From NCBI GenBank assembly GCA_964036045.1, contig OZ038378.1, forward strand, positions 158,906,001 to 158,970,000: 64,000 nt of DNA. The letters run 5' to 3'. The position numbers were made by a program, and so were the translations under genes. A model generated the notes under the pieces. The model made no database searches. It worked only from the letters and a program-made list of their open reading frames with translations, and had not been told where the DNA came from. Source of the stretch: Eutreptiella sp. 'Long Island Sound 2002' (taxonomy: Eukaryota; Protista; Euglenida). Of this stretch, positions 2,191-36,351 are shown piece by piece. The number at the start of each line of letters is the position of its first letter. The stretch's first letter is position 1.

Positions 2191-3901
2191 CGGGACTGTC
2201 GCCACTGCGACAGGGCGGGGTGGGGATGGCCGTGTTGGTGTGAAGATTCCAGACCCGCGTGTCCAATCCCCACCCGGGAGGCCTTACTTGCTGCCAGAGC
2301 GACTTTCAACGAGGCGGCAGCGGGTTGGGCAATGGCGATGGCGGCTGTTGGATCATTTAGGGTGGCGGCCGTGGGCGTTCGTGGCTGGGCCCCAAAGACG
2401 CAAGCCAGGTACCGTTCCGCCCTGTCCGCGGTGGCAAAGTATGAGGGAACCAGGGCTTTGCGGACGCCGCTTACTGACACGCTGTCTGACTTCTTGGCGT
2501 CAAGGATCTCCATGGGGCAAGCCAGATCCACCCTCAGGGGTTATGTGTCCGCAACTCGGGCGGCGGAAGATATCAAGCTGCTCCCGGGCTGTGTTCAGGC
2601 CATCCACTGGAGACTTGCAAAGTCTGGAAAGCCGACACCAGGGCAGCCATACCTGGGACCGGAGGGTCTATACCTCCTGTGGACCAGAGCGGCCTCGCCG
2701 GTTGAGCAGGCAGTGGCAGCGTTGGCGAGCCTCAGTTGGCTCCTCTTCTTGCGAGTCTCTGAAGCGGTGTCCATCACGCCAGCGGGACTGGAAAGCGATT
2801 CCGTGGTCCTGTTCGTCACTACCAAAGTTGGCGGTCACAGGGAGGTGCGGCGACCACTTTATGAGGGGACGTTCGTGGGTCCGATTCCTTAGATCCTACG
2901 CCGCGGCAAGCTGCATCCCGGAGGGTCAACCGTTGGTTAGGGGAGGGGTTGAGGCAGTGGAGAGGATCTTCGCAGACCTCCTCCGTGATTCCCCGTATAG
3001 TGGCCATCGGTGGCATTCCCCGCGGCGGGGGGGCGCTGCGGCCGCCTTCCACCGTTCTCCAAATGTGGCCTATTTCATTTGGTGGGGGAGGTGGAAGCGG
3101 CTGGCCACGGCGTTGGAGTACGCTCTGGGCTACTCTGACCCTGCGGTGGTTGGGGCTTTGGTGCTTCCATGGCCTGTTGGTGGCCAGGCTCCTGGTGAGC
3201 GTTTGGCTGTGCTGCGGGCCGACCTGTGGGGTGACCCCATGTATGCTAATCCCGACAGGAAGTCCGCGAAGGCGTCGCTGGAGATCGCTGCCCTGGTGCC
3301 TGCGGGGCCTGTGGTATCTCTTCCTGATATGGATGTGGCGCTCCATCGGGGGGAAGTGGACGACGTGGGGTCTGATTCAGATTCTTCGTCCGTCCCCTCG
3401 GAGTCTTCAGCCTCCGCCGTGTCCACAGCAAGTGCCTGTGGCTCCCCCGCGAGGCCCACACCGCCCGATGGTCCGGGGGAACGCCCTCCACAATTCACGC
3501 CGGGAACCGGACCTCAGGTCGTCGGGAGCGGCAAGAGGAGGCTGCGATCTAAGGGAGCCGGCAAGACACCGAGAATTGGCGCAGCAGAGGTCGACGGCGC
3601 TGGTACACCGAGGCCCAAGCGGCGAGTCATTGGTCTGGGCGGTTCCTATCTGTCCAGCGGCATCATGCGACGAGCGCGAAGGTGGGCCTGGGTAATGCAA
3701 AAGCCAGACGACCTGCCTCCAAGAGGAGGCATCCTGATGGGCCTCCAGTCGGGCCTGCCAGCAAAGTGGCTGTGCGTTCCCCGCAGGGGTGTCAGGGCCA
3801 GGGCGGCAGTGCAGCGACAGGCAAGCGCGCGGGGGGGGGGGGGGGTCGCCTGGAAATTCGCCCCCCGTGGGGGCGATCCGCGAAACCCCATCTGCCTGTG
3901 A
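2191..3901 (+). pseudogene. Tyrosine recombinase (SAM-like N-domain plus catalytic domain), one frameshift near 2865-2870, long low-complexity C-terminal tail
   Basis: Frame of ORF 2332-2892 gives KTQARYRSAL...STLRGYVSA, FLRVSEA (catalytic R) and TTKVGG (K). Frame of ORF 2240-3901 gives WHSPRRGGA (HxxR), GRW and ALEYA (Tyr). All YR motifs are present in order across the two frames. Confidence 0.85.
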
Positions 3902-8512: not shown

Positions 8513-11500
8513 ACCGCAGCAGTGGACATCAAACAAATCGAGCCCACGGAGCTCGATGCTCTGGTGGGGGCATTCTCCGGCAAGACAGATCTCGAACTGG
8601 CAGATCAACTGCAGGCAGATATCGATGCATTGAAAGCCAAACAAGATGCAGGGCAGGTGTTCGCGTGTCTTGGCTGGGAAAGGAGACAGGCGGGGAGGCA
8701 ATGGGGGGGGGGGGCTTACATGTTGGGCTGGACCCCAACCCCCGCCCCGCTCCCCCCGAGTGAAGGGTCACGCGAGTATGAAAATTTTTTGGTAAATTTT
8801 TTTTTCTGAGTCTTACGCAAGTCGCCCGTGTGAGACTTAAAAAAAAAGACAAAAAATATAAGTTTTTTTTGAGTGTTATCACAAGTGTATCCCAAAAAAG
8901 TCAAATTGCTTATTTTCGCTTCCGAGCCCCCCCTTTTTTGGGCCTTCCCGGGTAAGTAGCCATTGCGACCCAAACTAAGGAACCCAATTTTTTTTATGCC
9001 CACTTGAGACACCGCTGATTTTCTCCCCCACTGTGAAGCGTAGGGTACCCCCCAGACGGGAGGGGTTGTGTCGCCAATCCGCCACTTGTGGGCTACTTCT
9101 GACCCCGGGGGGGCGGCCGGGCCGGGTCCTTGTATGCGACCCCCCCCAGCCCCCCCCCCCCCCCGGGGTTTTGAAAGATAGTGGTGCCGGGTCGGCCCCC
9201 AACAAGTGTCCCTAGAGAAAACTGTCCGGTGCTGAAGGCGCCAATTTTTTTTTTTCATACTATGTGTTTATACTCAAAATCCTCAAAATTTTGTAGAGAA
9301 TTTATATTTGTGTTAAAACAACAAGAAAAATTTTTGACCTGAAGGAGGGCTACAGGAAGGCTACAGGCCCTAACAGCAACCCTAACCCTAACTCTAACCC
9401 TAACCCTAGGGCTAACCCTAACCCTAACCTTAACCCTGTCCCTAACCCCCCCCCCCTTCACCCCTGGCTGGACGCCCCCCTGACCCCTGGCCAGACCCCC
9501 CCCCGACCCCCAGCAGGAACACCCCCCCCCCCGACCCCCGGCAGGACCCCCCCCCCCCCACCCCGGGCTGGACCCCCCCCAGCTGGACCCCCCCCGACCC
9601 CCGGCTGGACCCCCCCCCCCACTGCCCCCCCCCCCCCCCGAGTTTTGACAGATAGCTGGGGGGGTGGTCGCATCAGGACCGTTGGTAGTCGCCCCCCCGG
9701 GCTTCTGACTTTGTCCCCCGCTCTGAAGCGTCGGGACCCTACAGACAGCAGGGGTTGTGGAGCCAATCTGCCCGCTTGTAGGCCACTTCTCATTTTCTCC
9801 CCCACTCTGAAGCGTAGGAGACCCCCTAGATGGCAGGGGTTATGTAGCCAATCCGCCCACTTGTAGCTCACGTCTGATTTCCTCCCCTGCTCTGAAGCTC
9901 TGAAGCGTAGGGGACCCCCCACACGGCAGGGGTTATCTAGCCCATCTGCCCATTTGTGGGCCACTTCTGATTTTCTTTACCGCTCTTAAGCGTAGGGTAC
10001 CCCTGAGACGGTAGCCAATCTGCCCACTTGTGGGCCATTTCCGATTTTCTCCGTTGCTCCAACGTGTAGGAGACCCCCTAGAGGGCAGGGGTTATGTCGC
10101 CAATCCTCCCACTTGTGGACCACTGCTGATTTTCTCACCCACTCTTGAAGCATTGGGAACCCCCTAGACGGCAAGGGTTATGTAGCCAATCATGTAGCCA
10201 ATCTGCCCACTTGTGGGCCACTTCTGTTGTTCCTGCTGTGAAGCTTAGGGGACTCCCCGTATAGTAGAGGGTATGTAGCCAATCCGCCCACTTGTAGGCC
10301 ACTTCTAATATCCCCCCCCCCCCGCTCTGAAGCGTTGGGAACCCCTGAGACAGCAGGGGTTATGTAGCCAACATGCCCACTTGTGGGGCTCCCAAAATGT
10401 TGGGGCAGCTCCCCGGAGCTGTTTGAGAGGCACTTACCCCCTCCTCCTCCACCTGTGGGCCTTTGCGTGCCTGCCCCGCCACTTGTGGGCCTTTGCGTGC
10501 CTGCCCCGCCACTGTGCCAGGGCCGGCCGGGGCCGACGAGGCGGCCGGCTGGAGCCGCTTGAGGAAGGCTCTAGGGCCAAGCCCCGCCCCCGTGGCGGCG
10601 ATCACTGCGGCGGAAGTGGCAGCGGTGGTGGCAGTGACGTTTGCAGAGGTCATCGATGACCTATGCCCCTGAGCTAGCCCCAACATCAGCACCACACAAG
10701 ATGTGCAGGACGAATTCGCCATGGCGCCACCCAACTTATTTGCTCTCATGCACTGTGTTACCGGGGGGCGGGTGATGTGGCGTCACACTTGGCGCTGTCA
10801 TGTGTTGTCGTGGTCGTGGCAGCCGCTCTGCATCCGGTTGTGCCGCACATACCTCATCCGGGACCCATTCGGGTCCCCACCGTTGTTTGTGGAGCTTTCA
10901 GCACCATCGCAGGCGATGCCATTGCGATGCCACTGTCATCGTGCAACGCTACTTTGGCCTTCTTGGGCTGGGGCGGCGCGGGCCTCGCCCCAGTGTCAGC
11001 GGGGAGTGTGATGTGCGCCGGTTGGCCCGCTGGGCAGCACACAGGGCGCGGGGCGGCATCAACGCCACATGGGATGAAGCGCCACTCCCCGCAGCTCGAG
11101 TAGAGGAGGTGGACCGCACCGCCGTAGGCAAGGCTGCGGCATTCAAGACAAAGCGGGGCGAGGGTCTTCTGCCCCGGCGACTGCGCCTCCAACCCCTGAT
11201 TTGCACCGCCGCCTGGCCCGCACAAGGGGCATACCTTAGGGTACTCCGGTAGCCCACGTCACATGCAGCAGGGACCTTTTGGGCTTTTTTTTGCGGCACT
11301 TTTTTGTTTCCGGTGCTACCTGTTGAACACCAGCGTGCCCTGCTTCTATACGTCCTGGTCGCACCTCAACGTGAACCTACATAAAAAAAAGGAACAAAGC
11401 GACTGATGATGGCCTCATTCTTGGGCATTCTGGGACGTGACACCATGGTCCCAAGAGCTTCCCACAAGTGGGCAGATTGGCTACATAAGTCCTACTGTCT

Positions 11501-28602: not shown

Positions 28603-29582
28603 GCAGATATCCGTGGCACAGGCACAATTATTGTATAGAAGGCACAACGTTGCATGAGTTGCGTGCACCCTCGCACGTCTTACAGGCGTTTGGGGTGCCA
28701 AGGACCTGGCGCGCACCCTTTTCCGCGGCTGCATGCCAGACTTCAAAATGTTCTGGGGCATGACCTCCTTGGCCATTGCTGGTCACTACACAATCCTTGC
28801 CAATGTTCCTCGCTCATACCGCAACGATGGACCTTTTGCAGGTATGATGTGTTGTGCAGTGACGAATGCTGCGCAACGCCGAGTCAAGGATGGGTCGGAG
28901 GTGCCCTGATTCCCAGTTTTCTGTTTCGGGGGGGGGGGGGGGGGGCGAATGCGGTGCCCGTAGTTTGACGCATTCCCCTTGAAACGTCGAGCTGTCCATA
29001 CTGCTGCTTGTTGGACTGCCTGGCCATTGTCTGCGGATCGCAATGCGAACATACTGATAGCCTCGCCGAGCGCCTGTTTGTATGGCAGTCGAGTATCAAT
29101 GAAAAAGTGTGGGGCACAAGTGCGGACAATTTCGCCTGTCGTTGACCCCTTGCACCCCAAGAACGACCGCCTGCATACAGCAGATCCAATTGTGGGTTGA
29201 GGGAATGTGTGTGGGTTGCACTGCTGATGGAGAATGCCCGGGCGACCTCCGAGCTCCGGCGCACATTTAGATTTGAGTGCCCCTCATCCCGCGCTGCCGA
29301 TGGAGGGAGGGCATGGTGGGGCGTGCACCAGGGGTCATCGACTTTGGGATTGGTGGACATCATGATGGTTTGGGCAAACCCCCCGGTTTTTTCCAAGCCC
29401 CCGAAACTAGTGAAAACGGACATTATGCGCATCAACAAAACCCCCCCTTTTTTTCGCAGCTAACAGCTAGGTGGCGGTGTTGACAATGGTAAACCCTTAA
29501 TAGGCGACCCTACTTGTACCCTTGTATCTTCCTTTGCATCATGTTGCATATGCATTTCAGTTCTGCAATTCACCTTAGTTCA

Positions 29583-32500
29583 ATGAATCATAATGAATTG
29601 CACTCTTTTCTTGTTGGGGACATACGTTGCCGCGCTATTGCATGCAAGTACAATGTGGACTCCTTGGATGTTTTTGGGGCTCGCATGGGTCTGGCCACAT
29701 CATCCCTCTTGTTGGCCGCTGGTGCTGCGTCAGGCACCCTCCCCCTTACACAATTTGGTCTCCTCCGTGGGCTGTGTATTGGTAGTGCAGCTGCAGGCCT
29801 TTGGGGTGCTGCACAAGGCACGGCTATTATTTCAGTCCAAGACGTTCCGAGGGTATTGAAGTGGAACGACCTCAAAGTGACACAACAGCAAGTACGATGG
29901 TGCGATACGATGCAAACCATCACAGCGGAATTGACGGCCACCCATGATGAGGGCATTTATGTGATGCATGTGCTGCAGTACGGCGATCAGTGCGTTGCAT
30001 TTGGTCGTCACCATGGGAATACGTTCTACATTGACGTGCACGGGTCCAAGCGTCTTCCCCGGCCCGGGGTCTTCTTGGTGCACTTCAAGTGTATTGGGGA
30101 CCTTGTGAACCATGGCATCAAGGCTGACGCAAAGGAACGTGCCGCCTATTGTCGTTGTGGGCAAGATGGTTGTACGAAGTGTGCCTTCATGCTTCACACA
30201 TGCAAGTTCCGCATGCCCGTCAGTGTGTTGGACGTTGGTCGCACCATTCTGCGAGATGTCACTGCCCAGCAAATTTGGGCTGCAGTCAAAGAGATGTATC
30301 CGTTGCGGCCCCCCAAACACGTCGTTACGACTGTTGATGATGTCGACTCTTTATTGGCGACTCTACATGTCGGTGCCATTGACTCATATTGGGTTGGCAT
30401 CATGAATGAGCGCAATGCCACTGCAGCCCAGGATGCCAACCGGACTGAGTACAATTGTGTATGTGGGCGTCCATTGCGTGTGCAGGCTGTGCCGGGCAAT
30501 GGCCGGTACACGGCCCATTGTGAGCAGAGTACTGCCCACAAGGCATACGTCTCCACCGGCCATAAATGGGTGGACAACCGTGGGCGGAAGAAGACAACTA
30601 CACCTACGAAGACGGGCAGCTCCAAGGCCACATCCATCAAGGTGTTCTGCAGCCCCCCCAAGACGGCCACCACCAATATTGAATCTGGACTACAAGCGCC
30701 ATCGGAATCATCGGAATCATCCGTCAAAAACACAGGTGCCATCTGTTGTGTCCACACTGTGCATGTATTGCTTGTAGTTTTGCTTTGTCCGGTGCATCAT
30801 GTGCGTTTACACATGTTACTGGGTCCATGTGTTCATGCTTATGCTTTCATGTATGAGGTGAAATACTGTCCCCCCTCTCCCTTTGTGCATGTATTGCTTG
30901 TAGTTTGGCTTTGTCCGATGCACCACGTGCGCTTACACATGTTATTGGGTCCATGTGTTCATGCTTATGTTTTCATGTGCGAGGTGAAACACTGTCACGG
31001 CCTCCCCCTTTGTGTCCCATTTGTAGGCCAGAGCGTTATCCATGAAGCTAATTTGGTGCCCCTTGAGGAGGAGCGTGAAATGGCTATGGAGGCTGCGAGC
31101 CACTCACCTATGCAAGTAGCAGCACTTGCAGGTACACCAGCCCTTGTGCACGGGGAGGCAACGGGGCCAGGGGGGTGGTGCGGTCCGAATTTCTGCTGTT
31201 GTGCACTGTGCTTTTCTGTGCTGTGCTGTGCTGTGCCGCGCGTTGTGCTGTTGTGTGCTGTGCTGCGCGTTGCGCTCCCATCTCACAGTTACCCCACAAC
31301 GACAACCACATCAATATTGCTGGGTGCGGCCGCAAAATATGACGCCACAGCAATTTGTCGCCAGCTACCCATACTATCGCCATGCAGATGGCAAGCTCCA
31401 ACCTGGTTATCTGGCATCTACAACTGGTATTGCGTCCACGACGTGCATTGGCCGGGGTACAGATGGAGCTCCCTGTTCGAAATGTGCAGCCGTCCTGGAG
31501 TCTCCAGATTTCAAAAGAGTCATGCAGGTGTCTGTTGCTTTGCTGCGGGACAGTCAGGACAGTCGGGACAGTCACAGGACAGTCGGGACAGTCACAGTTA
31601 CAGTGACATTGTACTGACAGTGACCGTGCCAGTCACACCCCCCCCCCCCCCAGACCTTCAGCAGTGCAGAAATACGGGACCATGATCGGAGAGAGTGCTG
31701 GGGTAGGATAAAGACCATAGGGCCCAGACTCCATCACCGTGAGCGGTGTGAAGGAACGCTGTCACACGTGAGCATGGCGTGGTGCATACAGGGTCAGGTC
31801 CGCAGGAGCCGCCTGACCCACATGCTTGCTCCCTGTCTGAAAGCGAATGAGGCTGGTCTGCCTACATGGCAGTGCAGTGCCTCATTCTGTCATCAGGCCT
31901 GAAGGACTATGGGCATCTGCTGGCGCTGTCTTCCTACAAACAGGCGCAATCGTGTATGTCTGTATTGTGTGCGCATGCGTGGGTGTCTGTATGTTTGCTC
32001 AGGGTCCCCCTGCAAGGGGGGGCTCGTCAGGTAGGGAGGTATACCCCTTAAACCCCTCCCCTCTGCTCTCGACCCCTTCCCCGACTGTCTGCCAATGCCA
32101 CACCAACCATCCCCATCAAAAATCAGTTAAACACAAGGGGGCCACTGACAGCACCGCTTTCGGAAATTTTATTTTTCATTTTTGGTGAACGCTTTCTTGT
32201 CTGTTAAACGGTGCTGTCTGATGGCGGGGTGCCTGGGTAGGCAGGCTTGCCTTCACTGCCCTACAGGGGGGGGAGGAGAGGACACCCAGGCACCCAAGGG
32301 GTCACAGAGAGCAGGGTGGGATGTAAAAATAAAAACCTGTAAGTTCCTCTCCACCCTCCCCGCCTGGGCGGCCCACTTGGGCCACCCCCTCCCGGCTTCG
32401 GCTTCCACACATTTTTTGGACTTTAACAGGTTAGGGATGTTGCAGACAATAAAATTTTCTGTGATCTGCCCTGGTGCCTCAACAGCCCCTGCACTGCACT

Positions 32501-35450
32501 GAAATCACAAGTATTTTGAACTGTGTTGTTTTGGCACTGCACTGTCCCCCTTCCCTTCCATGTGACTCTGCATTGACTGCCTGGACTGTGCTGTGCTGCC
32601 CTGTGTCGTCCCCACAGGTCGCAACGTCCCAAGACGAGAAAATTCCGTTCGTCTACAGGGGAATGGGCCCCCTTTTGGAGCACTTACGTGAGGTGCGGCG
32701 CAGACATCTCCGCAGTCAGATGAAGACGCTCAACAAGCTGCGGCAGTGTGCACGGCTGGGTCGTCGTACAAGCCTCCATCAACAGCTGCTTGTTCTCATG
32801 AGTGACACAGCATATCACCCTCGACTGCCTGCAGTGTTAAATACGCTGCTGCACCGCAAGAATAGTGTGCAACAAATTATTCACACGCTGACTCGTGCAG
32901 TCCAATACGTTCCTCGCTATACCGAGATGGAGAAGGACCTGGGATTGCTGACTTGGCGATTGGGGGGCCCCCAATTACTGTATGCTTTCAACGCAGCTGG
33001 TCTCCTGCCCCAGTGGGGGGTGTTGCGGGATCTGCACAAGCAATCACATTTGGTAATGGGCCCTGACGTCACGGCTGCGGATATCCTTCGTATTCTGCCA
33101 GACGACCTCCCTTTCTCAGCAATTTACATTGTGATTGACGAGGTTGCGGTTGATGGAAGGATTCGCGTCCTGGTTCAAGACGGTGTTGCCCGATTGTATG
33201 GTTTCTGTCACGAGCACTGTGGACCAGTGGAGCTCCAGTCAGAGGATGCAGCCTACGATCTACAGGAGAAGCTACTTGATGGAACTGTGCACCGCGCCAC
33301 TGTTGGCACAGTTGTTCTCCTTGTGCCTATGAACGAAAAATATCACCGCGGATTTCCCCTCATGTTGTATGGCAGTTGCAATAGATTTGATTCTGACATG
33401 ATGGTGAGCTTACTGACTGGCATCACGCGCGCTTTTGAATCCCCTGAGCTGGCAGCCCGAGGACGAATCATGGGTTTGGGAACCGACGGTGACGCCCGGC
33501 GTGCAGCTGCACACATCCGGTGCTTGGTGCCCACTTCTGCGGCTGCCATTGTGTTGCCTGGAGTTGCAGCATGGCCGCACATTTGATGTTCTTCAACTGC
33601 GTGAGCGATTAATGACTATTGTGGCACTTCAAGATGTGTTTGCCCGTCACCCTGAATGGAAGCAAAAGCATCGCACGTACTTGGCAGATCGTCTTACCCC
33701 GGCTGCTTTCACTGGTGACAATTCTGTCAGCAGCATCCGTCTGGGCCCTACCTGGCGTGCCGCCATTACCCGGGCAGAGGGCACACTTCGTGCCCATCGC
33801 AGTATTGGTGCAGAGGCCACAGGAATTTTTGACGAATTATTCTCAAAGGGTTGCACCCTCCTGCGACCCCGCGGTGCATGGTTGTGGAAGGAGATGGAGC
33901 AGGAGCCTGAAGAACATTTTGAGGAGCGCCCTGCACTTTCCGTTGACAATGACAAGAACACTGATGCCGCACCATGCAATCTGGAAAACATGTTGGCTGT
34001 GGACAGTCAGGACAACAAGAAGGGGCAGTATTTGGATTTGAAGTCTGGGAAACGCATTCACGTGGCAACATTTGTGAATGACTTGTACAACAAGGATGTC
34101 ACCAGCAGTTCCGCTGATCGTTTGAGGCGCACACGTGGTGATTCTGCCGTGCCAATGCCCTTACAGGAGGATGCAGCCGATGGGGTCTTGCCTGGCACCC
34201 CATATTGCAGTCTGTTGACATTCAAGCCTGCAGGGGGTGATGCAGTCACGAGTGCTGCTATCTTCAGTTATGTTGAAACGCGCGTAGATACCAAGAAGGT
34301 ACAGGCTCCGAGTCCTGTAGATCTTGTGGCTTGTCCCACAGCAATGGTTGTTGGGGAGTACATGCCCTTCCAAGATGCTGGCGATGGAAAATTGCTGTGG
34401 ACAGGGCGTTATGGGGCAGAGGTCACAGTACCAGCCACTGCAGTTTTGTTTGTGGAGCTGCAGCTGGGACCCAGCACACGGTGGTTGGTGGAAAGTGACA
34501 CGTTGAATGCCTTTGTGGATACCAGCAAGAATATCACCACATGTCCAGCACTACAAGCAGAACCATACCCTCTTGTGCATACCACGTCTGTGCGCGACAA
34601 GGTGAAGACGAAGCCCTGCTTGTTTTGTGGTGTCGACATTGCGCTCAACAACATGATGGGACATGTCACCAATCATTTTCTTGATGGGGACAGCCTGCAA
34701 GAAAGGGCCCATGCCGGGGAGCACCCAATGTGTGGCTTCTGTGGTGCCACTGCCGGCAAGTGCAGCACCCAACTTGTGGGCAAGAAAATGTCATCAAGCT
34801 GTCCGTATTTCTATGCATTCCGCTATGGGTCCGCGGTGAAGAGGCACGCCAATGTGCCACGCAATTGTCCCGTTGCCCTTTGTGATGCCACTCATTTCAC
34901 ATTGGGTATGGCACAACATCTCAAATGTGCGCACCCTAACACAGATGTGGTGGTGCCAGATTGGAAGGTCGAGCGTGCCACCGTACGCAAGGCCAAAAAG
35001 GTGCCGAAAGGCATGTCCAAGCCCATGGTTCAGGTGCAGGTTGAGTCCGTTGAAGTCGCTGGGGCAGCATCAGAAGTTACTACTACGTCCGATGGCGGTG
35101 GTGATTTGTATGGCCAAAGGCGTGCTACGCGCAGTGACAGCGACTGGTGCCCGCCTGCCACGGACAACATTGATGCAAGTAGTGACGGAAGCGTTGAGAA
35201 GGAGGACAACGAGAGTAGCAGTGATTCTGAGTCTGGTTCCTCTACCGACACTTCTTCTTCGTCATCGACATCTTGTACTTCGTCCTCAACCCCTGATGGT
35301 ATGCCTGTTGTGGGAACAGGACGCACGAAGAAGTACACCAAGACCTCTACTCGCATCTCAAGTACTCAGCAACCCTCGGCCAAACCTGCCGCAAAGAGGC
35401 GCACAGCATCGCAGCCTGTGGCCCACAGTGCGAAACGGGCAAGGCAGTAG
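29583..35450 (+). pseudogene. Spliced RNase H-fold transposase-like gene, about 1,400 aa (exons 29583-30735, 31027-31131, 31289-31527, 32618-about 33526, about 33570-35450)
   Basis: Three GT-AG introns with matching phases (1, 1, 0). Acidic motifs IVIDEV (33134-33142) and GTDGDARR (33482-33490). C-terminal Cys/His domain CLFC...GH...CGFCG...CP...C...H and N-terminal CxC...H...H. Frame change near 33520-33570. Confidence 0.75.
30759..30995 (+). repeat. About 125-bp tandem duplication inside transposase intron 1
   Basis: TGTGCATGTATTGCTTGTAGTT...GAGGTGAAAYACTGTC occurs twice. Confidence 0.85.
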
Positions 35451-36351
35451 CTTTGACGGGTGCTATTGGGTCGTGAGGGCCGTGACCCCGCATTTCCTGT
35501 GAATACGGCCTCCCCTGCCAGTTGAAAGTGATTGTGTGCAGGACTTCTTCGCTGTGAGTTTTTTTGCAGATACGGTCGGTGTGGGGGTACGGGGCCATGC
35601 CTAGCCCTTGGAGGATCAGCTGCTGATGAAATCTGGTAATGTTCAAATGAAGTACACTGGAAACGGTCGTTGTGGGGGTATGGGGCCATGCCTAGCCCTG
35701 GAAGGATCTGCCATTGCACTTCTTCATGAACTACGCGATGTGTCGCCAATGCATGCAGTCTGTTTGGGGCCGTGGGCTGCATGGCCGATGCAATTGAGGA
35801 AACGGCCCCCCTCCTGGCAGGGGGTGTGGGCGGCGTTAGGCACCAGCTCTGCAGCGTGGTGAGGGCTTAGAGTGGAGGAGCCCGCTTCCTAAATGCTTAC
35901 CCCTTAGGCCACCGCGTCCTTGCCTTGAGTATGTTGCATAGAACATTGGGTGCAAACCACTTTTGTCTAACTTTTTGTCCAAATTTGCCGGTTTACGTCC
36001 AACTTTTCGTACAATAGAGAAACCCCCCCCCTTTTTTCCAAGGGTCAAATTTTAGGTGTCATTTTTTAAATAACCCCCCCCTTTTTTAGGACCCCCCAAA
36101 AGTAGGCGAATCAACACTATGTCCGAAATTAACGATATCGATGACCCCTGGCGTGCACAGGCCCGCCACTCGTGTGCGGCAGGGGAAGTGAGTTTCGTTA
36201 GGAATCCGCCGCGCTGCTGTCATACCCACAACTCGGTAGGAACAAGTCGCATCCCCTGGCGTACGCAGTAAGATCCAGCTCCCTTCTGATCACGCGTGAC
36301 CCGGCAGACGCTCGTGCCAAGTCTGGGCGTGCAGCATCAACAGCGCGAGCA

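Follow-up and report, generated by a model that had tools for sequence, protein, structure and literature searches.

The window analyzed here is a stretch of 64,000 nucleotides from the euglenid Eutreptiella sp. 'Long Island Sound 2002' (assembly GCA_964036045.1, contig OZ038378.1, positions 158,906,001 to 158,970,000 of the forward strand). Positions 29329-36150 of this window are occupied by a transposon, which raises two questions: to which kind of transposase does the encoded protein belong, and is this copy still able to move by itself? A preliminary description had regarded it as a complete element with terminal inverted repeats (TIRs), an 8-bp target-site duplication (TSD) and a spliced gene for a transposase of about 1,400 amino acids (aa), and had proposed a relationship to hypothetical proteins of mushroom-forming fungi, either as a P-like lineage or by horizontal transfer. 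With a probability of roughly 0.8, our answer is that the transposase family forms a branch of the P element/THAP9 (TNP-like) transposases that is deep and has not been named, and that the copy in the window is a deletion derivative without autonomy.

The ends of the element and the adjoining regions are the following:

29321..29328, no strand: left TSD copy GCGTGCAC, read directly and the same as 36151-36158
29329..29341, + strand: left TIR CAGGGGTCATCGA; a weaker inverted match (GGACA block) runs on to about position 38 of the element
29376..29454, + strand: left subterminal region with two A(2-4)C(6-9)T(6-7) motifs at 29376-29392 and 29437-29454, candidate transposase binding sites
35451..36137, + strand: 3' non-coding and subterminal region with the motifs AAAC9T6CCAAG (36020-36037) and AAC8T6 (36072-36087)
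36138..36150, - strand: right TIR, TCGATGACCCCTG on the + strand, exact reverse complement of the left TIR
36151..36158, no strand: right TSD copy GCGTGCAC, read directly

Direct reading thus reproduced the perfect inverted 13-bp TIRs and the perfect 8-bp TSD that had been noticed earlier. Exact matches to the 13-mer occur just at the two element ends in the whole 64-kb window. If up to two mismatches are allowed, the window contains seven matches versus 1.66 expected, and none of 100 shuffles reached this number.

Further copies were identified by searching exon 3 of the transposase gene against 1.84 billion protein representatives. The search returned near-identical fragments of open reading frames (ORFs) from a public assembly (ENA ERZ25074135), whose loci were then fetched; five euglenid loci (L001-L004 and L008) were examined. 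In three blocks, L001 and the window element share 99% identity; L001 possesses the same 13-bp TIRs and is flanked on both sides by the TSD GTTTCAAT. L004 represents subfamily B, which has about 80% DNA identity to the window element; its TIR is CAGGGGTCATGCA and its TSD is GTTGCATG. L002 and L003 are additional copies of subfamily B. The latter two are 98% identical across 7.9 kb and, to judge from this similarity, are a duplicated segment or two haplotypes; the region directly upstream of both copies is filled for kilobases by tandem arrays with a periodicity of about 41 and about 48 bp (L002 1-9847, L003 1-9661). L008 (8175-11049) belongs to a third, far more diverged lineage of the same assembly with a protein identity of 38%. 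It keeps the segment that is missing from the window copy; the match is broken into many pieces, and the locus may be decayed.

Three euglenid copies therefore carry three distinct perfect 8-bp TSDs (GCGTGCAC, GTTTCAAT and GTTGCATG), and an 8-bp duplication is present at every complete euglenid copy examined. Three independent insertions with different perfect duplications indicate that the family transposes and generates 8-bp TSDs, and the 99% identity of L001 argues for recent activity. All five loci contain differing internal deletions or frame breaks, two of the deletions being located at microhomologies. More deletion joints were found in sequencing run X1 (30638>34561, 31040>34598 and 33566>34874) and also in run X5, and the summed contig depth of the end regions exceeds that of the core by a factor of 5-10. 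Differing deletions and a depth excess at the ends are the usual picture for deletion derivatives of a cut-and-paste element. The element is a real, recently mobile cut-and-paste transposon with TIRs and 8-bp TSDs, as its ends had suggested from the outset.

The coding part of the window copy is organized as follows:

29583..30735, + strand: exon 1, an open frame starting at ATG 29583 (MNHNELHSF...); N-terminal region found solely in euglenid copies
30736..31026, + strand: intron 1, 291 nt, GT-AG; joint seen in a contig of RNA library X11
31027..31131, + strand: exon 1b, 35 codons, phase 1 on both sides; the X11 contig runs into it, and the GT donor at 31132 keeps the phase
31132..31288, + strand: putative intron, 157 nt, GT-AG, placed by phase and by conservation starting at 31294
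31289..31527, + strand: exon 2, conserved Cys/His module C..YPxxxH..C..CxxC, aligns to fungal proteins
31528..32617, + strand: intron 2, 1,090 nt, GT-AG, with about 830 nt of nested high-copy repeats (about 31600-32590)
32618..33562, + strand: exon 3, helical/helix-turn-helix (HTH) region and N-terminal half of the RNase H core with VIDEV, GFCHEH and TDGD; phmmer matches; family columns D270 and D388
33562..33570, + strand: deletion junction with GTTG microhomology; about 611 bp (about 204 aa) gone and frame shifted, according to comparison with L001/L002 and fungal proteins
33570..35450, + strand: remaining coding part, out of frame with exon 3, with the post-catalytic helix HGRTFDVLQL and the Cys/His modules CLFCG and CGFCG

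Homologues of the encoded protein comprise 273 cluster representatives at E ≤1e-3. The 13 clusters that bear a name come from 11 species, and each consists of hypothetical proteins from Agaricomycetes, as the preliminary description had supposed; the proteins measure 689-1,713 aa, belong to no Pfam family and stem from the genera Pluteus, Favolaschia, Pleurotus, Lactarius, Arthromyces, Sphaerobolus, Dentipellis, Schizophyllum and Artomyces. Most of the unnamed hits carry no taxon. Examples of fungal members are TFK58748.1 from Pluteus, KAK7059407.1 from Favolaschia, KAJ8456665.1 from Pleurotus and KAH9021614.1 from Lactarius. The homology covers the core and the C-terminal region, with E values down to 3e-16 from one exon. 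Euglenid and fungal proteins have the motifs YPxxxH, GGxxLLY, GxCxEH, xDGD, DxxH..KR, LExxFGxxR and DxLQL in common. An alignment of 29 long proteins and the euglenid pieces yielded the following conserved columns, which are numbered according to the structural model described below:

D270: VIDEV in the euglenid protein
GxCxxH: GFCHEH in the euglenid protein
D388-G389: TDGD in the euglenid protein
D436-x-x-H439..KR: absent from the window copy
D489: absent from the window copy
E610-x-x-F-x-x-x-R: IESTFGTVR in euglenid copies, not in the window copy

The motifs that had been quoted for the window copy (YPYYRH, GGPQLLYA, GFCHEH, TDGD, HGRTFDVLQL and CGFCG) are present and fall on conserved columns of the family. 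The catalytic triad would consist of the Asp residues in VIDEV and TDGD together with the Glu in IESTFG, a motif that corresponds to LExxFGxxR in fungi.

Pfam searches gave no match at E ≤1 for the window exons or the euglenid ORFs, and none above threshold for the three large ORFs of the window copy and seven full-length fungal proteins. However, 11 of 32 family members match PF21787 (TNP-like_RNaseH_N) below the gathering score (best E 2.6e-4) and two of the 32 match PF21789; no other Pfam family recurs among them past two chance-level matches. In a language-model feature search with window exon 3, orphan clusters from Basidiomycota took the top rank, followed by PF21787 clusters. Exon 1 gave no Pfam match and no usable match in the ESM Atlas feature search, and a word-based protein search with residues 150-560 of P0151 returned just its own near-copy.

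The genomic surroundings of fungal members show that the family is associated with defined ends outside the euglenid genome as well. Three genes of Lactarius pseudohatsudake (one 90% cluster) lie in a 6.26-kb repeat with inverted-repeat ends beginning CAAGGGGGGTGCGGGATT. One copy (L006) is flanked on both sides by the 8-bp TSD GGAGCTTC, and a blind search for TIRs plus TSD recovered exactly that pair. The Lactarius TIRs start with CAAGGGG, so that the link of the protein family to TIR ends and to TSD length, which had been drawn from the window copy, holds beyond the euglenid genome. On this limited evidence, the fungal family likewise appears to reside in TIR elements with 8-bp TSDs. The TIR sequences of the euglenid and Agaricomycete elements agree only at their CA(A/G)GGGG start, and in the fungal proteins there is nothing that corresponds to the euglenid exon 1 (about 380 aa). 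In Artomyces pyxidatus (L010, 9082-12251), a Plavaka gene (PF18759) adjoins the family member P0036 on the opposite strand; it is a separate gene.

In order to compare the fold, the core of the Pleurotus homologue was modelled with AlphaFold and the family alignment. A fungal protein was used because an uninterrupted euglenid core was not found, and no composite euglenid protein was built. The model has a predicted local distance difference test (pLDDT) value of 88.3 and a predicted template modelling (pTM) score of 0.73. In this model D270 lies on a strand, D388 follows immediately after a strand and E610 is part of a helix, which is the placement expected for an RNase H triad. Comparison with solved structures gave the following values (TM, template modelling score; rmsd, root mean square deviation):

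P element transposase (6p5a/6pe2): Foldseek E 5e-10 (TM by target 0.59, 517 columns); VIA-align Z 22.4-23.0, rmsd 3.9-4.0, 375-377 residues aligned
RAG1: Foldseek E 1e-4; VIA-align Z 10.3
Transib: Foldseek E 6.5e-4; VIA-align Z 11.6
Hermes: Foldseek E 0.03; VIA-align Z 7.5

In the VIA-align superposition with 6pe2, model residues 187-644 correspond to chain residues 154-565, and 375 of about 412 P element residues are aligned. In a shape search of the ESM Atlas, every named match belonged to a TNP-like/THAP9 cluster. Clusters of PF21788 (TNP-like_GBD; GBD, GTP-binding domain) match model residues 385-702 at a TM of 0.85 and residues 406-646 at a TM of 0.81, in shape only. This insertion-domain segment is absent from the window copy. 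The modelled fold is that of an RNase H transposase, and the P element transposase (Z 23 compared to at most 11.6 for other kinds) is by far its closest solved structure. The P-like lineage that the preliminary description had considered is thus supported at the level of the predicted fold.

The P element transposase consists of a THAP domain, a leucine zipper, an HTH domain and an RNase H domain into which a GTP-binding domain is inserted between beta5 and alpha4; its catalytic residues are D230, D303 and E531, and it generates 8-bp TSDs (PMC7776569). Of these features, only the THAP domain is missing from the family. Within the superfamily the TSD length is 8 bp for P and 7 bp for 1360/Galileo (PMC3698922), and the TSDs of three euglenid copies and one Lactarius copy lie within this range of 7-8 bp. 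The euglenid elements furthermore resemble P element and THAP9 in their short TIRs with conserved subterminal sequences, their internally deleted non-autonomous derivatives and their multi-exon transposase gene. In the model, a helical DNA-binding region precedes an RNase H core that is split by an all-helical insertion at the position of the GBD. The distance between the second Asp and the Glu is about 222 residues in the family and 228 in the P element. Moreover, in each of the 29 long proteins the third residue ahead of the Glu is an Asp, similar to the GTP-contacting D528 before E531 in the P element (PMC7776569). The euglenid proteins, in contrast, contain a Gln at this position. GTP as a cofactor and a donor cleavage with a 17-nt stagger characterize the P superfamily, and the invariant Asp is the one hint that the family, too, may use GTP. 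Unlike P element proteins, the family members are about twice as long (1,200-1,700 aa) and have a long Cys/His-rich C-terminal region, their sequence similarity remains below the Pfam thresholds, and the perfect TIR has 13 bp instead of 31 bp. An unrelated Cys/His module takes the N-terminal position of the THAP domain. When this exon 2 module was modelled alone (pLDDT 82), its best match among 48,161 PDB chains had a Z of 2.8; an assignment to THAP or to another recognizable fold was therefore rejected. THAP domains are reported to be restricted to animals (PMC7776569), and for this reason the domain may not be defining outside animals.

Several findings weigh against the assignment to the P element branch. 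The model is that of a fungal and not of a euglenid protein, the euglenid link being made by sequence alignment only, and none of the five euglenid loci contains an uninterrupted core. The fold comparison covers superfamilies with a solved structure, to which Kolobok, Academ, Zisupton and others do not belong. The first two Asp residues are 118 positions apart in the family versus 73 in the P element, with the GxCxxH motif in between. Neither a TNP-like Pfam domain (TNP-like_RNaseH_N, TNP-like_GBD, TNP-like_RNaseH_C) nor Tnp_P_element was found above threshold in any member, a profile of the family core gave just a chance coiled-coil match (E 0.48) against all PDB sequences, and the THAP domain (PF05485) has no match in the window exons, the ORFs or the seven full-length fungal proteins. 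The subterminal motifs have a direct orientation at the two ends of the element, which differs from the P element. In fungi, a second Lactarius copy (L007, 5449-11723) has both TIRs and unequal 8-bp flanks, GGCCGAAC and GGTATTGT, which suggests recombination between copies or a rearranged flank. Finally, a blind search for 10-bp TIRs with a perfect 8-bp TSD around single Favolaschia and Artomyces genes found none.

A more far-reaching variant deserves to be considered tentatively, at somewhat less than even odds. The euglenid elements and the Agaricomycete orphan family might form one unnamed lineage at family or superfamily level that stands beside P/THAP9, having kept the P-type insertion domain and the 8-bp duplication and using its own Cys/His DNA-binding module instead of THAP. 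If so, the P-type and possibly GTP-dependent architecture would be old and widespread in eukaryotes and not mainly animal, and fungal genes that so far lack annotation would, by the hundreds, code for transposases whose ends are known.

Among the competing assignments, membership in Kyakuja-Dileera-Zisupton (KDZ) or another superfamily without a solved structure fares best, the P element then being merely the nearest solved fold. Zisupton elements reportedly have 8-bp TSDs as well, and the PDB covers few eukaryotic transposase superfamilies. According to a 2025 survey, KDZ elements are greatly expanded in Agaricomycetes (PMC12730594). Nevertheless, we consider this explanation improbable: no KDZ or Plavaka Pfam match occurs in the seven full-length fungal proteins or the 32 core sequences, where PF21787 and PF21789 recur as described, the named ESM Atlas shape matches are all TNP-like/THAP9 even for the insertion domain alone, and the alignment extends over nearly all of the P element residues compared.

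Somewhat less probable still is a recent horizontal transfer from a mushroom-forming fungus into the protist. It would agree with the restriction of the named homologues to Agaricomycetes, and P elements are known for horizontal transfer (PMC5751038). However, the identity between euglenid and fungal proteins is 22-31%, and that of the fungal proteins among themselves is 24-35%. In an unrooted maximum-likelihood tree, the three euglenid rows group together, 2.57 substitutions/site away from all 29 long proteins. The same assembly also contains subfamilies with about 80% DNA identity and the lineage with 38% protein identity, and the introns are of the GT-AG type in the GC-rich context of the host. 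The low identity, the long branch and the 38%-identical lineage in the same assembly suggest that the family has resided in the protist for a long time and argue against its recent acquisition from mushrooms, as had been entertained before. Since the tree is unrooted and most hits carry no taxon, an ancient transfer may still have occurred.

An assignment to the hAT superfamily has even less in its favor. Elements of this superfamily such as Ac generate 8-bp duplications and often have CAGGG-like (YARNG) termini, to which the 8-bp TSD and the CAGGGG termini of the element correspond; Hermes is among the fold matches, and hAT transposases likewise have an RNase H core with a large insertion domain. 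The insertion domain of the family is, however, of the P element type according to its match to TNP-like GBD clusters (TM 0.81-0.85), and the fold match to Hermes is far weaker (Z 7.5 and Foldseek E 0.03 versus Z 23 and E 5e-10). Moreover, neither a hAT dimerization domain nor any other hAT Pfam match was found in the exons, the ORFs, the seven fungal proteins or the 32 members.

Can the window copy move by itself? The last intron of the preliminary gene model, a 43-nt GT..AG stretch at 33527-33569, spans the deletion junction, which lies at about 33562-33566. If this stretch is spliced out, the frame is open for 1,428 codons from ATG 29583; otherwise a stop follows after 821 codons. At the junction, L001 and L002 read ...IVLPG(V/M), continue with DQYRTPWGITNFDSPHL... 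for about 204 codons to ...IESTFGTV.TLH, and then reach HGRTFD. The segment that the window copy lacks is located at 10806-11170 of L001 and 10837-11448 of L002. The approximately 204 residues have no counterpart anywhere in the 64-kb window, and fungal homologues aligned to the window leave 205-232 residues unmatched at this point. With the deletion, the DxxH motif, the catalytic Glu (E610) and the greater part of the insertion domain were lost; the window copy retains D270 and D388 only. That it is nevertheless autonomous and that 33527-33569 is a real intron of an active 1,428-aa transposase is almost certainly wrong, since the open frame obtained by splicing crosses a breakpoint with GTTG microhomology that L001 and L002 read through, the fungal proteins contain the invariant DxxH, D489 and E610 at this position, and the product would have no catalytic Glu even when spliced. 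Judged from its sequence, 29329-36150 is an internally deleted, frameshifted and non-autonomous copy that would be unable to move alone. Of the earlier gene model, the three GT-AG introns in phase were retained; the completeness of the element and the intactness of its transposase had to be given up. For annotation, it is advisable to mask the window copy as a non-autonomous transposon instead of listing it as a gene for a 1,400-aa protein.

The following mechanism is conceivable. The intact protein would comprise about 1,630 aa, beginning with the lineage-specific N-terminal region and a Cys/His module unlike THAP. Next would come a long helix, a DNA-binding region of helical structure and the RNase H core. 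An insertion consisting only of helices, which in the model can be superposed on the GTP-binding domain of the P element, would divide this core, and a long C-terminal region with more Cys/His modules would complete the protein. The enzyme would bind the ends (CAGGGGTCAT) together with the subterminal C-run/T-run motifs as putative binding sites, excise the element and join it to target strands 8 bp apart, which would give rise to the 8-bp duplication. In the window copy, the loss of about 611 bp at the GTTG microhomology has put the coding sequence out of frame and deprived it of DxxH, of the catalytic Glu and of the greater part of the insertion domain. This copy would then be mobile only if a full-length relative supplies the transposase in trans.

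We regard the family as a new, deep P-like lineage without THAP; the window copy itself is a non-autonomous deletion derivative of the ordinary kind. When cut-and-paste elements of fungi were surveyed by means of Pfam, P elements turned up as single occurrences only (11 copies), and the Repbase references for fungal P elements given there are confined to Pucciniales and Allomyces (PMC5751038). The 2025 survey of Agaricomycete transposons deals with KDZ, Plavaka and others, and neither its abstract nor its section headings name a P-like family (PMC12730594). A search of the literature, Repbase not being part of it, found nothing on this transposon family in Agaricomycetes or Euglena. The assignment provides a function and a mobile-element context for a large family of mushroom proteins listed as hypothetical (273 cluster representatives), and it extends the P element kind of transposase, including the insertion domain, to a euglenid and to Agaricomycetes. 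The defined ends, duplication length and candidate binding motifs could be used for annotating the family and for testing an ancestral GTP dependence.

The gene structure is supported by the comparison of subfamilies A and B. Their conserved blocks coincide with the open frames, and the intervening stretches do not align. Differences at the first, second and third codon positions amount to 49/35/122 in exon 1, 12/10/35 in exon 2, and 50/47/151 and 56/36/119 in 33570-35450. This third-position excess is found in every exon, exon 3 included, and indicates that all exons have a coding history, even exon 1, which is specific to the lineage. The 3' end region, by comparison, shows even differences (34/30/38). 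The coding part ends with an acidic/Ser-rich tail and a stop at 35448-35450.

The three GT-AG introns (30736-31026, 31132-31288 and 31528-32617) keep the phase. RNA data bear on the first of them: a 151-nt contig of library X11, an estuary metatranscriptome, matches the window without a mismatch and connects 30733 with 31025, and a 2-nt slide gives the GT-AG intron 30736-31026. This evidence is thin, with a depth of 2 and possible DNA carry-over; the other introns were deduced from phase and conservation, and exon 1b is the weakest part of the gene model. Intron 1 contains a tandem duplication of about 125 bp (30750-31000), and intron 2 starts with a short tandem array of GGGACAGTCA-like units (31546-31596). 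Since intron 2 has only about 260 bp in L004 of subfamily B, about 830 bp have presumably been inserted in the window copy. In run X1, the summed contig depth is 7,000-33,000 at 31600-32590 and about 2,700-3,700 at 35573-36000, versus about 50 over the neighboring core. Most metatranscriptome contigs on the element sit on the nested high-copy repeats and hence give little information on its expression.

Several parts of the terminal regions are conserved between the subfamilies. The first 10 bases of the TIR are invariant in five copies from two subfamilies, and the GGACA block near position 28 as well as long subterminal stretches are kept between A and B. The A(2-4)C(6-9)T(6-7) motif occurs twice at each element end, all four on the + strand, and elsewhere in the 64 kb once and weakly. 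Subfamilies A and B share the first left motif together with its CCAAG tail, and the AAAC(6-9)T(6)CCAAG motif, which has the same orientation at both ends and is not inverted, has been kept despite a coding divergence of 20%. The final 140 bp of the element are nearly invariant, and the 3' non-coding region of about 700 bp is 85% identical between A and B. The conservation of these terminal and subterminal stretches, in the 3' non-coding region without codon bias, would fit a cis-acting role.

Further fragments of the transposon family were not found in the 64-kb window. Two places with TIR-like matches, 9927 and 10644-10665, were considered as further copies and rejected. The match at 9927 originates from a tandem repeat (9900-10400) with a unit of about 120 bp that contains CAGGGGTTAT. 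Positions 10644-10665 form a 22-bp near-palindrome, CAGAGGTCATCGATGACCTATG, that resembles two element ends (one and two mismatches) overlapping at TCGA; it is not flanked by a duplication and may be a chance occurrence or an old footprint.

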